Source: Octopus sinensis
Lineage: Eukaryota
Length of the DNA stretch: 64,000 nucleotides
Assembly (NCBI RefSeq): GCF_006345805.1
Contig: NC_043013.1
Location: 12,772,001 to 12,836,000 of the forward strand
Direction: 5' to 3'
A model generated the notes under the pieces. The model worked only from the letters and a program-made list of their open reading frames with translations. It had not been told where the DNA came from and made no database searches. The position numbers and the translations under genes were made by a program. Positions 5,401 to 26,249 of this stretch are shown one piece after another; within the stretch, counting starts at the first letter, position 1, and each line of letters opens with the position of its first letter.

Positions 5401-6907
5401 TCATCACCTTATTTTACTACTATTACTATTTTTCTTAAATATAAATATTAACACACACACAAATAACAAAGCATATTTCATCTACTTTGTTGGAGTATCT
5501 CAACCGATCAGCATGTAACTTCCTTTCGGCTTTCGAAACCGCAACTCCAAATCACCATGCAATAACCTATCACTAGACCAAGGAAATTTTACCTCCGATC
5601 AGAAGTGGACTCTCAAGAAAATAAACAGACTGACTCGGTAAGAGAATCATACAACAGGAACGTTTCATGACCATTCCCCACAGGCAAGACAACCAGGCAG
5701 AATGTTAAACTTGGTCTCCAGAAAGAATAAGAATAAGAATTATAACGAATCAAAAATTATATTCTTTCACAGAAAAGATTATAGATACACTGATTCCAAA
5801 GCAGTCCGTTACAGGCGAAAAACCCTCTACGCGACGGTAAAAGGAATCACATGCAAGATGAAAGAAACTGTAACAAAATCCCTTTTGCTTACTCTCTTCT
5901 TTCTTTATTTGTTTCTCTCTTAACTCAGTATGATTGAACTTTTGGCGTTCCACATCTTTTATATACTTCGCCCATCATTTTCTGATATTATTGAATTTTG
6001 TGAACATTTAATCATTTAAACATATTGATCCACACTTTTTACATTCTTAACCTATCATTTATGATACTATTGAATTTTGCGAACATTTAATCATTTAAAT
6101 ATGTTTTGTACTTCGCAAACAAAATAGGGCCTTGGGACCGAGGAGAGGAGGTAACGCTTAGAAAATATCTTGAAGGATGGTGAACATAGCGACAGAAAAT
6201 TTGCGACTGTTCAGCTACGGAACCAGTGTAAGAAGGGAAGAAAAAGGGGTACTGACAGTTGGTCACGCGACAGTAGCAGGCAGAGGAGAAAGACTGCAGG
6301 GTGAGAGAACGACAGAGAAAAATAGGGAAGGGATGAAGGGAAAGAAGAAAGGCTGGGAATACAAGAGAGAGAAGGGGTAAGTAGAAAGTCTATAATAAAT
6401 AAATACACACACACACATATGTGTATATCTATATATATTAAGTATGTAAGTATGTTTTAAAAGTTGTGGGCTAATTACGGAGTGCTCTTAGAGAGCCTAT
6501 GCGAAAAAATACAGAGTAGAAAAAATTCAAAACGCAAGTCTTAGGAAGTCAAACAGATTCCCGAACGCATAAATGAGAAATTTCAATCGAAGTAGTTGAA
6601 TGATATATATTTATACACATCAACATAAATCATACATGTACAGGCGTGAAAATGCTCCAAGGTTATAAAGAATGAAATCAAACATACATAGAAATATAGA
6701 AGAAATATAAAAATTTATATAAAAATACTTATCAAATTACATATAAATAAATTTACATATAACGAGTTATGCGTGATAAATATAGGAGGTGCAAAATGGA
6801 TGAGAGATTGGTACATTCTGTAAGGATCAGATATCGAGATATGTAGGTATTTAATGGGTCTTTCGATATGATGAAGAAAGTTTATCTGGAAATGTCTGTC
6901 TACTTAC

Positions 6908-6966
6908 AAATCATCAAAAGATGTCGATGTCAAAGGCAATTGAATTTGTGTTTCTGTTGTTTCAGG
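6908..6966 (-). CDS. Candidate 59-nt exon, copy A (PETTETQIQLPLTSTSFDD)
   Basis: Branch-like attaac, polypyrimidine acceptor gtttttcttctattctctag, donor gtaagtag; only the phase 0-to-2 frame is open; splice sites conserved in three paralogs. Confidence 0.55.
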
Positions 6967-7892
6967 CTAGAGAATAGAAGAAAAACAACGTTAATTGTTG
7001 AAAGAAACGTTTGGGTTAGTATTTCTAGGTATAGAAAACAAGTTTTAAGTAAAATATATGTTTGAAGGAGGAGGTATATAAGTAACAGTAGTAAGCAAGA
7101 GGCAAATAATAACCACATCTAAAAGTCTAACAACTACACACGGATATAGACACAGAAAAATCCATTTACAGAAAAAAGATAAACAGTTTTACTTTCAATT
7201 TAGTTTTAGAGATGTCAACATGGTTAGCCTCATTGAATTCAAATAAAGATCTGAAATCGTATTTACAACTATTTTATTTTTATGAAGTCCAGTATTTATG
7301 ATATCAGTGCAGATCCTTTTAATATCTTACTAATTTAGGCATTATTAAATAAAATCTTTAGGAAAATATCCTCAGATGCAATATAAAACACAATTTATTT
7401 ATATATATATATATATATCAATGAATTATAAAGTTCACATCCTGAAATCATCAAAAGTCTCCCAAAAGCCTAAACTTCAAAGATGGAAAACAGTAAAGAC
7501 ATTGAAGAGTTCTATAAGTTATAATTTTTTTTAAAATTATGATGAATATATAAATATCATTTAAAGTAAGTTTATTTAAGTGTGTACATATTAATTCTAC
7601 ATTTTCCCAATTGAAAAAATTTTATACAATATTTTTAATGAAATTTGTACAACTTTTGCAAGGATTGTGCAGTCTAAACAGGAACTAACTTATCTTTCTC
7701 AATTCACCCATGATTGCAGGTGTCTTGCACAAATACTATTCACTTATGAACGTAATCCGAACACTTCCTTGCTACACTAGGGTATTAGTTCCAGTGACAA
7801 TAACATCTATATTCCCAGAAGATCAACATAGGAATCAACAAAGCGAACCTGACTGGAGTACAGCATATATATATATATATATATATATATCT

Positions 7893-9019
7893 TTGGTTTG
7901 TTAAGAAAACTCTAGTGGTTTTTAACCTTTAAATTCAGATACACATATCTCGGCTCAGACATCGTCTTATTTTTTGAAGCATTTCTCACTCAAGAAGTTG
8001 ACGAAATGCTTGAAAAAGTGGTAGTCGGTAGGCGACAGGTCTAGTGAGTACGGCGGATGAGGCAGAGTCTTGTAGCCCAATTCATTCAACTTCTGCAGGG
8101 TCAGTTGTGCGACGTGCGGCCGAGCGTTGTCGTGGAGAAGAATTGGTCCTTTTCTATTGACCAATGCTGGCTATTGTTGTCGGAGTTTCTTATGCATTCC
8201 ATCCATTTACTGACAGAACTTCTCCGCCGTAATGGTTTTGGATCCAAAAAGATGTGATGGATGAGACCGGCCGCAGACCACTAAACAGTCACTAAGACCT
8301 TCTTTTCGTGCAACTTTGGCTTCGGGAAGTGCCTTAGAGCTTCGTCGATGTCCAACCACTGAGATGAGCGTCGCCGGTCGTCGTAAAGATTCCACTTTTC
8401 ATCGCAAGTCACAATCCGGTCGAGAAATGTGTTGTTTTTGTTGCGTAAAAGAAGGGAAGACGACACTTCAAAACAGCGTTTTCTTTCTTTTTTGGTTGTC
8501 GTTCAATCGTGCGGCACCCATTTCTCGAGTATTTTTGTTTTTCCAATCTCTTTCAAGTGGTTGGAAATCGTCGTTTACGTTACGTCTAATTCAGAAGCAA
8601 GCTCTTGAGCAGATGTGTGTGGATTGGTTTTCACTAAGGCTCTTAGTTGATCGTTGTCAACATCCGATGGCTGACCACTACGCTTATCATCTTCAAGATT
8701 CTCATCACTGCTACGAAATCTCTTGAACCACCATTGTGCTGTACGTTGATTAGTGGTTCCTGTGGGGCCAAACACATCGTTGATATCGCGAGTTGTTTCA
8801 GCACCCTTTCGGCCTAACTTGAACTACAATAATAAAATTATGCGAATTTGCTTTTTGTTCATGTTGTATTCAACGTTCCAGAAAAAATGCCTTAATTATT
8901 CAAAAAGAAAAAGAGTAACACGATTAGATAGAGCGAAAAACAGGCTTTAAAATGTTATGTAAAGTCAAAGAAATTTATCGAAAATTAATTTGAAAATACA
9001 TCATTTCCTAACAACCTAA
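7893..9019 (-). mobile_element. Mariner DNA transposon (Hsmar1/cecropia-like), defective
   Basis: Degenerate ITRs (ttggtttgttaagaaaac vs catttcctaacaacctaa) next to (TA)n; transposase motifs [40 protein letters not shown]. Confidence 0.92.
7967..8862 (-). pseudogene. Mariner transposase pseudogene
   Basis: Fragments in several frames (ORFs 8575-8775, 8281-8466, 7967-8164) with stops, frameshifts and loss of the C-terminal end. Confidence 0.9.
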
Positions 9020-9074
9020 CATGTATATATATATATATATATATATATATATATATATACACACACACGTATAT

Positions 9075-9750
9075 TACGTTCACTTTCCATGTAGCACTGA
9101 ATCCCGTTTTCTTTGCTGGACCAGTTCTCCTCCCTGCTCTATAATTTGCTGTTGCTGTATTAAGATAACAGCTGTGATCAATCTGCATCTTTACTGAACC
9201 AATGCCGAGCGAGAGGCCTTCTCTTAAGGACCCAACCTCATTCTTTTCTGTCACATCCAGACTTTCTACGCGAACTCCTGTCGCATAAACTGAGTTAAGA
9301 TTTCTTTCCCCACCATCGTCATCACCATTATTTTTCAATGACTGATTGCTTCAAGTAACTTTCTATTGGCTGGTTTTGCTAGGGGTCATCCTTTACAGCG
9401 TTTACTTTTTCGCAGAACACCGCCCATGGAATGTGTTGACGTTTCTTTCGTATTTATAATAATTGTTGATGTATAAACGAGAGTCCGCGAAGAAACAGTA
9501 ATGCGCATTCTCTTCCCGTTTGGCAATTCTTTGCCCCTACATTTTACTCTTTTCTTCCGCTTCAAAGTAAGCACCGCAAAATTCGAGATACGTATTTCCG
9601 TCACTATATCCTTGTTGCACATTTGCACAGTCTCAACACCAGCCTTTCCTTTTCAGACTCTGCTGTTTGCGAAAAGTTTTAAATCAGCCATGAAGAGGTG
9701 TTTGAGACGAGGTCCATTCTTTCTCAGCTTATAGTGCCCATTGATTTTGC
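9075..9750 (-). mobile_element. Decayed R4/Dong-like fragment (copy B)
   Basis: Duplicate of 280-960. Confidence 0.6.
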
Positions 9751-25408: not shown

Positions 25409-25461
25409 CCATTGGCAGAAGATGCCATTGCTACCAGCCTTCGTCCTCCACCTCTTCCAAT
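25409..25461 (-). CDS. Candidate 53-nt exon, copy C (IGRGGGRRLVAMASSANG)
   Basis: Acceptor gtttgtattattctctag, donor GG/gtaagtag; 6 nt shorter than A/B, so phase 0-to-2 is preserved. Confidence 0.55.
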
Positions 25462-25945
25462 CTAGAGAATAATACAAACATGGTTAATTGCAGAAAAAGT
25501 TTTGGAGTTAGAATGTTTAGCTGTTAGTAACAAGGTTTAAACAATATGCTTATATGAAGGAGGAGCTATATAAGTAACTGTGGTGTGCAAAAGACAAAGA
25601 ATAACCACATCTAAAAATCCAACTACACACAGATATAGACTCAGAAAATATAATGGGAAAAGATATTTTTATTTTCAGTTTAGTTGTAGAAATCTGAACA
25701 TAGCTATCATTGCTTTCAAATAAAGATATGAAATAGTGTTTATAATTAGTTTACTTTTATAAGGTTCAGTTTTCATGATATCAGTGAAAATCCCTTAACA
25801 TCTTATTTTAGGCATAATTTAGAAATGTTTAGGAAAATAAAATCATCAAATGTAATATGAAACACAGTTTATATAAGTATAGATGGATTATTATTTACAT
25901 TATTTACATTAGTCGGATATGTGTCCTCGTATTGTTTGTTGTTGC

Positions 25946-25987
25946 CACAACGTTTCGGCTTATTTACTCTCCAGCCTTCATCAGGTG
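25946..25987 (-). ncRNA. Minimal type I hammerhead ribozyme, canonical C3-G8
   Basis: cac-CTGATGA-a-ggct/agcc-GAAA-cg-TT-gtg; stem I cac/gtg; palindromic aacgtt stem III. Confidence 0.65.
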
Positions 25988-26067
25988 TTCTAGTGGAATT
26001 TTAGACCCAACCCTAAGTTCTCATTCTTAAGGTATTTGTTGGTGATGTTACTAAAATTCCACCAGGA

Positions 26068-26109
26068 CACCTGATGAAGGCTGAGGAATAAATCAGCCGA
26101 AACGTTTTG
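26068..26109 (+). ncRNA. Hammerhead motif in opposite arm (stem I damaged)
   Basis: cac-CTGATGA-a-ggctg/cagcc-GAAA-cg-TT-ttg. Confidence 0.5.
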
Positions 26110-26249
26110 ATAACAACAAACAAGCTGAGGACATAACCGTCTAATGTAAATAATGTAAATAATGTACAGAATTCTTCGTCTCTGAAAGAGAGAACAGTAT
26201 AAATGGATTATAAAGATCACATCCGGAAATCATCAAAAAGCTCCAAACA

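Follow-up and report, generated by a model that had tools for sequence, protein, structure and literature searches.

A probable tandem array of fast-diversifying coding mini-exons at the 5' end of an octopus TRPM-like gene

The window, i.e. the entire 64-kb stretch of Octopus sinensis DNA analyzed here, carries three units, A, B and C, with approximately 675 bp of homologous flank in common (Table 1), and an nhmmer search of it returned these three copies only, with unit C matched at E=4e-167. Each unit encloses a short minus-strand segment, and the coordinates, lengths (59, 59 and 53 nt), AG acceptors, GTAAGTAG donors and branch-like CAATTAAC motif of these segments are all as given in the preliminary description. 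While the flanks of A and B are 78-80% identical to those of C, the unit middle between the AG and GTAAGTAG is only about 50% identical (p ~1e-5). Exons A and C match at 27/53 positions with a 6-nt gap, which is the level of aligned non-homologous background (0.39-0.5), versus 317/408 (77.7%) in the upstream and 74/92 (80%) in the downstream flank, with Fisher p values of 4e-5 for A-C and 8e-6 for B-C, bearing out the original claim that exon divergence here exceeds that of the flank. Flank identity is 9/9 and 11/11 immediately up to the AG and the GT. Across eight unit copies, namely the three of the window and five in the 105-kb O. vulgaris locus L001, the edges of the divergent block fall exactly at the AG and GTAAGTAG in 8/8, the YAG and GTAAGTAG are kept in 8/8 and the branch-like CAATTAAC in 7/8, and the exon lengths (59/59/56/53/53/53/44 nt) are all 2 mod 3. 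Scored individually, the splice sites are moderate and none is exceptional.

Table 1. Features of the mini-exon array in the window
Feature	Position	Strand	Basis
Copy 1 of recent tandem duplication, with [A-type + E4] module; cut by window edge	1..7618	.	self-blastn
E4a mini-exon, 70 nt, identical to E4b	2542..2611	-	
Unit A, flanks homologous to units B and C	6815..7490	-	alignments, nhmmer
Exon A, A-type mini-exon, 59 nt, phase 0>2, PETTETQIQLPLTSTSFDD	6908..6966	-	
Copy 2 of tandem duplication, with exon B and E4b	8794..16505	.	self-blastn, global alignment
E4b mini-exon, 70 nt, phase 2>0, (L)SLSSERNLESLSEVDSYGDQESQ	11419..11488	-	
Unit B, flanks homologous to units A and C	15705..16380	-	self-blastn, alignments, nhmmer
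Exon B, A-type mini-exon, 59 nt, phase 0>2, PETTETQIQPSLSSTFFDD	15798..15856	-	
D-type mini-exon, 49 nt, phase 2>0, (G)PERQEMAQVSGQKPKQ, acceptor ttgcag, donor gtaagc	17668..17716	-	ortholog L001 75533-75581
Unit C, flanks 25315-25889 and 26210-~26285, split by insertion	25315..26285	-	alignments, nhmmer
Exon C, C-type mini-exon, 53 nt, phase 0>2, IGRGGGRRLVAMASSAN-G	25409..25461	-	orthology to CDS exon of O. vulgaris P0001
Foldback (MITE-like) insertion within unit C	25890..26196	.	inverted repeats, target-site duplication
First coding exon of model, 'MQ', ATG CAG followed by GTAAAT	31516..31521	-	sequence identical to L001 10001-10006

The insertion that splits unit C is flanked by a 13-bp target-site duplication, AATCCAT[C/T]TATAC, at 25877-25889 and 26197-26209; homology to A and B picks up again beyond it, and the same insertion is present in the O. 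vulgaris unit vU1. The upstream stretch singled out earlier corresponds to 7416-7473 in A and 26198-26255 in C (83% identity), and in C it is located past this 307-bp foldback. It is highly improbable that the units themselves are a transposable element or dispersed repeat whose middle varies at random and whose splice-like signals are coincidental. The region is TE-rich and the 3' edge of the unit is fairly sharp, but no terminal or terminal inverted repeats or target-site duplications were seen when the sequences at the unit edges were read, the exon bounds are exact in every copy with lengths that keep phase, and 5/5 copies in L001 lie at annotated CDS mini-exons. Where the preliminary description had allowed that the flanks might be a high-copy element, there are three copies in the window and five in L001, all at mini-exon positions.

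A 7.6-kb tandem duplication contains units A and B, and its two copies differ by 193 substitutions over 7279 aligned sites (2.65%, global alignment). A and B thus represent a single exon type duplicated recently in tandem, and are not independent copies. The two exons differ at 5/59 positions, and all five differences change the amino acid in frame 0 (L/P, P/S, T/S, S/F), as had been reported; taken alone this is no outlier, with the excess over the unit flanks not significant by itself (p=0.18) and at least five differences found in 6.2% of all 59-nt windows of the duplication. The A-B unit flanks differ by 4.3%, as against 2.4% for the remaining duplication, and E4a and E4b show zero differences while A and B have accumulated five nonsynonymous ones. 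The proposed three-member paralog family does not hold in that form, as C represents a distinct and older exon type within the same transcription unit, and consequently the A-versus-C contrast sets non-equivalent exons against each other.

On the minus strand exon 1 (MQ) comes first, followed in order by C, D, B, E4b, A and E4a; the D and E4 exons, too, are bordered by AG and GT. The chain from C to E4a spans 360 nt and is open across 120 codons (P=0.005 for its 77 non-redundant codons), and all six of its splice-site pairs are intact in the window. Exon phases alternate between 0>2 in the C- and A-types (44-59 nt, all 2 mod 3) and 2>0 in the D- and E4-types (46-70 nt, all 1 mod 3), so that each two-exon module is in frame, and the reading frame survives whether such a module is duplicated, lost or skipped. 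Indels in the exons are all in frame (3, 12 and 12 nt; between exon types, 6 and 9 nt), as opposed to only 1/9 flank indels being a multiple of 3; two of them are the 12-nt insertions of E4b relative to the L001 E4, which recur in the second E4 of the O. vulgaris protein P0002. The ATGCAG of the first exon, followed by GTAAAT, is conserved identically between L001 and the window, and the P0001, P0002 and P0005 proteins begin with MQ. The left edge of the window is reached after E4a, ahead of any SLOG exon.

Relatives were found by an X-padded peptide search, which matched O. vulgaris P0001. Exon C is orthologous to a CDS exon of this model (L001 16452-16505) inside a 97.5% identical block. More generally, these exons are annotated as CDS, in the frame proposed originally, in O. 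vulgaris CAI9735597, 612, 616 and 658 and in O. sinensis RefSeq XP_036366250-253; annotation from two pipelines in two species thus supports the candidates as splice-bounded coding exons. The O. vulgaris models and the O. sinensis TRPM-like channel have the N-terminal layout MQ-C-D-A-E4-...-SLOG domain. In P0002, P0005 and P0006 the N-termini are composed of these exons in identical frame and order, joined to LSDAT_euk/SLOG (Pfam E=3e-70). C-type and A-type exons are included together in all three; a mutually exclusive exon cluster was considered, given their common phase class, and was rejected on this co-occurrence. The N-termini of XP_036366250-253 are likewise made of these mini-exons, and their alignment to TRPM2 structures (E=1e-143) begins only at residue ~96-104. 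Isoform X4 of O. sinensis skips a 70-aa mini-exon cassette, which at the level of annotation points to alternative splicing.

Placed ahead of the SLOG/LSDAT domain, at which the protein body would begin, the mini-exons would encode a tail of ~80-145 residues, acidic, rich in Ser/Thr/Glu/Gln and probably disordered. The tail has no counterpart in any solved TRPM structure, and in a search of 1.84 billion representatives it was seen in Octopus proteins only. The models start with MQIGRGGG... or MAEVSGQK... and have neither a hydrophobic signal peptide nor a Cys framework; the likening to conotoxins or secreted immune-type genes gives way to an N-terminal tail of TRPM-like/SLOG proteins. The family is annotated in O. 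vulgaris, so that the label 'unannotated' can apply to no more than the window's own genome, from which two protein searches returned no window-encoded protein. On these grounds we consider it probable that an octopus TRPM-like gene has A, B and C as genuine coding mini-exons at its 5' end, where they form a fast-diversifying tandem N-terminal array. Octopus 'TRPM-like 2', the NCBI name of the relatives, has been placed in TRPS, a sister family (PMC13143021), and by that statement these genes would belong to TRPS (soromelastatin) rather than TRPM proper.

Across copies, the exons diverge ~2-6 times faster than their flanks: 12.5% vs 3.6% between window exon A (wA) and vU2, 12.5% vs 3.4% for wB-vU2, 13.2% vs 3.1% for wC-vU3 and 15.1% vs 2.4% for vU1-vU3 (p=2e-4), with A-type versus C-type comparisons giving 42-53% vs 21-23%. 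Pooled between window and L001, the exons differ at 17/204 sites and the flanks at 92/2389 (p=0.005). Strictly orthologous pairs show a trend only (7/102 vs 44/1182, p=0.12), with an N:S of 5:2; the acceleration signal stems from the duplicated-copy comparisons, not from strict orthologs. Exon changes number 27 nonsynonymous to 2 synonymous where 8.6 synonymous are expected (Monte Carlo P=0.0028, on small counts), their codon-position counts are 12/14/3, and the control frames look neutral (P=0.49 and 0.98), which upholds the claim of fast evolution at the protein level. Three sites are tri-allelic among wA, wB and vU2. Some of the changes lie close together (GGTGGAGGA vs CAAGAAAGA), and such a cluster may have arisen in one multi-nucleotide or micro-conversion event. 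The wC-vU1 flanks differ by 2.7%, approximately the background. The intronic flanks give no sign of constraint and evolve neutrally. Amino-acid changes build up in duplicated copies several times faster than changes at neutral sites, and we infer selection to diversify the duplicated modules.

It is scarcely credible that the locus is instead a non-coding host gene, with introns conserved for snoRNAs or small RNAs and exons as unconstrained spacers. Several TGATGA...CTGA motif pairs do occur in the upstream flank and Rfam C/D-box matches at E=3-9, but the whole window yields 0 Rfam matches at gathering score and 0 tRNA, the sub-threshold matches are at chance level and do not correspond in position between A and C, A carries a mutated C-box-like motif, the flanks are unconstrained and the exon change is codon-periodic.

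The window is colinear with the O. vulgaris P0001 locus at 2.2-3.4% substitutions, indicating orthologous loci in close Octopus relatives, and A1-E4-C4-D modules of L001 are missing from it. P0001 lacks a SLOG domain, has a repeat-derived exon and ends within an inverted (palindromic) duplicate, and no other gene is called within 10 kb of it; the model is clearly partly artefactual, and by these features the locus could be a truncated 5' copy. A decaying relic, i.e. a non-functional 5' TRPM-like duplicate whose mini-exons drift and owe their excess divergence to micro-conversion from diverged paralogous exons in the cluster, would accommodate these observations, the missing modules and the neutral-looking orthologous N:S. 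We regard it as quite unlikely, as the 120-codon chain is open with every splice-site pair of the window intact, the exon indels are all in frame and drift would not give the overall N:S.

A rather unlikely, though possible, alternative to diversifying selection is that gene conversion or unequal crossing-over homogenises introns and synonymous sites while purifying selection holds type-defining residues (A1/A2, C1/C3, D1/D2), the exons being old and stable and the introns only looking young. Units do recombine inside their shared flanks, since vU3 is an A/C recombinant in which a match of 95-100% to the region upstream of B gives way, at ~L001 77.21-77.25 kb, to one of 96-98% to unit C. Between paralogous copies 22/22 differences are nonsynonymous, with both synonymous changes sitting in orthologous pairs, and the A1 and A2 exon types are common to several paralogous genes, yet their flanks differ by just ~3.5%. 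The D and E4 flanks are only 60% identical, versus 78% for A/C, and if both module halves were duplicated jointly, the latter figure may stem from homogenisation at a later stage and not purely from neutral decay. Against this, conversion tracts would have to end at most a few bases from either splice site of an exon of 53-59 nt, the recent A/B pair is already five nonsynonymous changes apart with none in E4a/E4b, and the tri-allelic sites indicate that the same codons changed repeatedly.

In the preferred reading of a coding, diversifying array, growth would have occurred via repeated tandem duplication of two-exon modules, with the A- and C-type exons stemming from one old duplication, as their 78% identical flanks suggest, and A and B from a recent, lineage-specific duplication of an [A-type + E4] module. 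The flanks serve as substrate for the non-allelic recombination that reshuffles modules, as shown by vU3. A more far-reaching proposition, which we hold to be unlikely, is that octopus has a chromosomal cluster of TRPM-like/SLOG genes which generates lineage-specific N-tails from a recombining library of phase-paired mini-exons by diversifying selection and combinatorial alternative splicing. If true, this would constitute a variable-region system on a sensory channel or a nucleotide-sensing SLOG protein, whose variable N-tails possibly tune partner binding or act in a conflict or immune context.

Snake-venom PLA2 isozymes and conotoxin superfamilies are accelerated-evolution gene families with conserved introns. 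As in these, the octopus introns are more similar than the exons, nonsynonymous changes outnumber synonymous ones and the copies sit in tandem clusters. However, exons within one gene are duplicated here rather than whole genes, the product is an intracellular-type N-tail of a channel/SLOG protein lacking the signal peptide and cysteine framework, and conservation is good across the first half of the A-type exon (PETTETQIQ). Tandem exon-duplication arrays that encode repetitive or disordered segments and are used as cassettes are known from the titin PEVK exons and the Dscam/protocadherin-type variable clusters. The octopus array shares with them short phase-compatible tandem exons, homologous flanking introns, copy number change via unequal recombination and alternative inclusion; in contrast, its A-, C-, D- and E4-types are all included together, frame is kept by exon pairs (0>2 plus 2>0) rather than by symmetric single exons, and exon bodies diverge faster than introns. 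The Dscam variable exons are treated in PMC3364881. With TRPM/TRPS (soromelastatin) channels the likeness lies in the LSDAT_euk/SLOG (MHR1/2) domain, and in the O. sinensis relatives in a full TRPM-type channel body; the difference is the mini-exon tail.

An anonymous exon-like repeat can thus be assigned to an identifiable gene as the beginning of an octopus TRPM-like channel, in an unusual regime wherein mini-exons change the protein several-fold faster than their own introns and shared flanks would drive module gain, loss and hybridisation. Should transcripts confirm the exons, selection-driven diversification of a channel's disordered N-terminus, the splicing use of phase-paired modules and the reliability of current octopus annotations in such loci become testable. 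Several O. vulgaris models are SLOG-only, which fragmented models may explain.

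The three minus-strand mini-exons A, B and C lie exactly where the preliminary description had placed them and have the lengths that it gave. A pyrimidine-rich tract that ends in CTCTAG leads into each of them and GTAAGTAG comes after it, while a conserved CAATTAAC lies about 25 nt further 5'. These splice signals are the exact borders of the divergent block: between A and C the 9 nt before the AG and the 11 nt after the GT are identical. As had been claimed, the exons of A and C are far less alike than their flanks, with 27/53 identical positions and a 6-nt gap in a MAFFT alignment that has 317/408 identities upstream (77.7%) and 74/92 downstream (80%); the exon versus flank contrast is significant both for A-C (Fisher p=4e-5) and for B-C (8e-6). 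The A-C exon identity is at the level of unrelated sequence after alignment (0.39-0.5). The five differences between A and B and the amino acid changes ascribed to them also hold, but the status of this exon as an outlier is weak (p=0.18 versus the unit flanks), as at least five differences are seen in 6.2% of all 59-nt windows across the A/B duplication, in which 193 substitutions in 7279 aligned sites amount to 2.65%. A profile search of the window recovered A, B and C as the only copies of the unit, i.e. the exon with its homologous flanks, and with just three copies there the transposon reading was rejected. Our hand-made splice-site scan returned moderate scores (acceptors 5.2/9.6/-0.3, donors 3.9/3.9/9.05) and was dropped as a finder of further exons, since such scores have no discriminating power.

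A search with the peptides that A, B and C encode in their open frames, given as separate pieces of an X-padded query, returned a single protein, P0001 (CAI9735616), an Octopus vulgaris 'hypothetical predicted protein' of 210 aa with two C-type exons, a single A-type exon and one further repeated motif. Its gene occupies 84.6 kb at a locus (L001; GCA_951406725.2, OX597830.1) that runs colinear with the window, in the opposite orientation and with 2.2-3.4% substitutions; this identifies the window as the ortholog of that locus in a close Octopus relative. A HMMER scan with P0001 led to a second protein, P0002, and a second word search to P0005, P0006 and the O. sinensis protein XP_036366251; all the O. 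vulgaris members (CAI9735597, 612, 616, 658) are encoded in one cluster on one chromosome. The gene ranges of P0002, P0005 and P0006 measure 181-192 kb. P0002 starts with MQ followed by IGRGGGRRPVAMASSANG (C), LELQEMAEVSGQKPKQ (D), PETTETLIQAPLASICFDI (A) and SPSSESSAEEDEESQ (E4), where D and E4 are further mini-exon types; then come IGGEEKRKLLKHTRK, which is C-derived, D, A and E4, and after these a SLOG domain (Pfam LSDAT_euk, E=3e-70). Likewise, the O. sinensis RefSeq protein named 'TRPM member-like 2' has an N-terminus of D-A-D-A'-type exons, followed by a complete channel of the TRPM type that matches TRPM2 structures at E=1e-143; its first ~95 residues find no match among solved structures. 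A 2026 phylogeny (PMC13143021) assigns the NCBI octopus 'TRPM-like 2' to TRPS, a family that is sister to TRPM. Exons of the A/B/C types are annotated as CDS in two species. Because they form the N-terminus of SLOG-domain and TRPM-type channel proteins, the analogy to toxin-like families that was initially drawn has to be given up. A role as hosts of small RNAs was similarly rejected, as the units contain neither Rfam families nor tRNAs, and no snoRNA in them was convincing.

In the window itself the mini-exons belong to one minus-strand chain with AG/GT boundaries at every exon. The six of them joined make up 360 nt or 120 open codons (P=0.005 for 77 non-redundant codons), and the product is made of 78% disorder-promoting residues with a net charge of -14. 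All of A, B and C are in this one chain of one gene; therefore they are not one exon in three genes, and in place of the proposed 'three-member paralog family' we find that a single exon type was duplicated to give A and B and that C represents a different type within that one gene, with the frame kept throughout. The homology between the A and C flanks, together with a weaker one between those of D and E4 (60% over ~300 nt), points to growth of the array by duplication of a two-exon module. These modules would serve as splice cassettes; in the O. sinensis isoform X4 the first D-type exon is joined straight to the one that precedes the SLOG domain, so that 70 residues of mini-exon sequence are left out. 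The second of the rival explanations holds that the window locus is a truncated relic, which is favored by the failure of the orthologous model P0001 to reach the SLOG domain, a model that is itself partly artefactual.

Features of the window and of the orthologous O. vulgaris locus L001
Feature	Location	Strand	Remarks
Exon 1	31516-31521	minus	6 nt; ATGCAG/GTAAAT
Exon C	25409-25461	minus	53 nt, phase 0>2
Exon D	17668-17716	minus	49 nt, phase 2>0
Exon B	15798-15856	minus	59 nt, phase 0>2
Exon E4b	11419-11488	minus	70 nt, phase 2>0
Exon A	6908-6966	minus	59 nt, phase 0>2
Exon E4a	2542-2611	minus	70 nt, phase 2>0
A/B tandem duplication	1-7618 = 8794-16505		7.6 kb; holds A and B
Foldback/MITE-like element	25890-26196		307 bp; inside unit C; long inverted arms
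Its target-site duplication	25877-25889 and 26197-26209		13 bp
Penelope-like element	35775-39157		RT + GIY-YIG; inverted terminal repeats 35719-36154 / 38744-39206
Block of two LINE copies	40728-49865		9.1 kb
Match to P0001 C-terminal 'exon'	25089-25189	plus	
Match to P0001 C-terminal 'exon'	L001 94532-94639		
Match to P0001 C-terminal 'exon'	L001 77873-77976, 16720-16823	minus	
Copy of [C unit ... D exon] block	L001 77.2-86.1 kb	plus	palindrome
Copy of [C unit ... D exon] block	L001 86.2-95.3 kb	minus	palindrome

Two parts of the P0001 model stand apart. Its C-terminal 'exon' (KLPELTDCCTKYLPDIISLTVDSLSFFHHGKYQ) is opposite-strand sequence ~220 bp 3' of each C-type exon, and as it is read only in an inverted duplicate, this end of the model is probably artefactual. 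A hydrophobic 'FYNSTIIADIVDAISIVV...' exon (L001 42842-42997), missing from the window, recurs in the small hypothetical proteins P0003 and P0004 from two further chromosomes of O. vulgaris; it is likely to be repeat-derived and spurious.

We aligned the three window units (wA, wB, wC) with five from O. vulgaris (vU1, vU2, vU3, vU3i, vU4). The exons exceed their flanks in divergence in wA-vU2 (12.5% versus 3.6%, p 0.008), wB-vU2 (12.5% versus 3.4%, p 0.006), wC-vU3 (13.2% versus 3.1%, p 0.003) and vU1-vU3 (15.1% versus 2.4%, p 2e-4), and differ by 42-53% between A-type and C-type units against 21-23% in the flanks. Pooling four exon types, each window copy versus its L001 counterpart, gives 17/204 for exons and 92/2389 for flanks (p=0.005), and with these comparisons the earlier claim that the exon diverges faster than its introns is borne out. 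The exon lengths (59, 59, 56, 53, 53, 53, 44 nt) are every one 2 mod 3, and the exon indels measure 3, 12 and 12 nt, against 1/9 multiples of three among the flank indels. Codon positions 1/2/3 of the annotated frame carry 12/14/3 of the inferred changes, of which 27 are nonsynonymous and 2 synonymous. Under a Monte Carlo set to the transition/transversion ratio of the locus itself, 8.6 synonymous changes would be expected (P=0.0028), and the two other frames are neutral (P=0.49 and 0.98). Amino-acid-changing differences are thus in excess between the duplicates, though some of the changes come in clusters and may be single events. Among wA, wB and vU2, despite a flank divergence of only ~3.5%, three exon sites are tri-allelic (window 6920, 6930, 6939, i.e. 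exon nt 47, 37, 28), a sign that either the same codons have changed repeatedly or the sites are hypermutable.

The flanks evolve neutrally, without constraint: between A and B the unit flanks differ by 4.3% versus 2.4% across the remaining 6.8 kb (p=0.007), i.e. they are less conserved, and C-unit flanks diverge by 2.7% between species, equal to the 2.2-3.4% background. On our reading, selection would favor divergence of duplicated modules in a disordered N-terminal tail. In the main rival explanation, introns and synonymous sites would evolve in concert while purifying selection acts on type-specific residues. The exon signal sits in the differences between duplicates (~22 nonsynonymous to 0 synonymous, tallied from the change list); the strictly orthologous pairs, wC-vU1 and the D exons wD-vD2, display a trend only (7/102 versus 44/1182, p=0.12; N:S 5:2). 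There are precedents for tandem exon duplication, for cassette splicing and for accelerated evolution with conserved introns, and the gene family itself is already known. Our literature searches turned up no account of the N-terminal mini-exon array of octopus TRPM-like/TRPS genes or of its exon-faster-than-intron pattern.

The units also recombine with each other. L001 is 95-100% identical to the window region upstream of B at 76.3-77.2 kb and 96-98% identical to window unit C from ~77.21-77.25 kb on; hence vU3, whose exon is intermediate between the C- and A-types, is an A-type/C-type hybrid joined in the shared 5' flank. It follows that wA and wB belong to the 'second module' and that their true counterpart in O. 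vulgaris has been overwritten. Consistent with this status, the window E4 bears both of the 12-nt insertions that characterise the second E4 in P0002, and on these two grounds orthology of wA/wB with vU2 was ruled out. Such recombination accounts for the large blocks that are duplicated and inverted at the O. vulgaris locus. Relative to L001 25.4-52.2 kb the window (16.5-17.1 kb) lacks ~26 kb and the modules A1-E4-C4-D, and O. vulgaris lacks the A/B tandem duplication, so that module content varies between close species. At ~68.7-99.3 kb L001 has a large palindrome of the [C unit ... D exon] block centered at ~86.17 kb, which represents either a genuine inverted duplication or an artefact of the assembly.

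Without insert a unit spans ~675 bp (A 6815-~7490); its 3' edge is abrupt, and at the 5' edge it decays. In unit C, as in its ortholog vU1, it is interrupted by the foldback element, past which homology picks up again (A 7416-7473 = C 26198-26255, 83%). Sub-threshold Rfam matches of this element to plant MIR hairpin families reflect only its hairpin shape. Outside the unit the surroundings of C have no likeness to those of A/B in DNA or protein, six-frame ORF pieces included. Rfam, at gathering score for the whole window and in E-value mode for the units, gave nothing over chance level, and the tRNA scan found no tRNAs; with both at chance level, the snoRNA-host and SINE ideas were abandoned. 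Exact look-up of a 526-aa LINE ORF and a 62-aa unit ORF gave no record. In Pfam, 20 long ORFs of the window yielded transposon proteins only (Penelope-like RT + GIY-YIG, two LINEs), and transposons abound in the window outside the units. The Penelope-like element and the LINE block are missing from the orthologous O. vulgaris locus, where the L001 coordinates abut at ~7053-7071 and ~5469-5475, and are therefore lineage-specific insertions. Finally, the 13-mer CTTTTGATGATTT occurs on the minus strand at both the 5' edge of unit A (7449-7461) and the 3' end of exon A (6908-6920), and in C CTTTTTGATGATTT is retained at the 5' edge only; the repeat in unit A may be a trace of the unit's duplication route.
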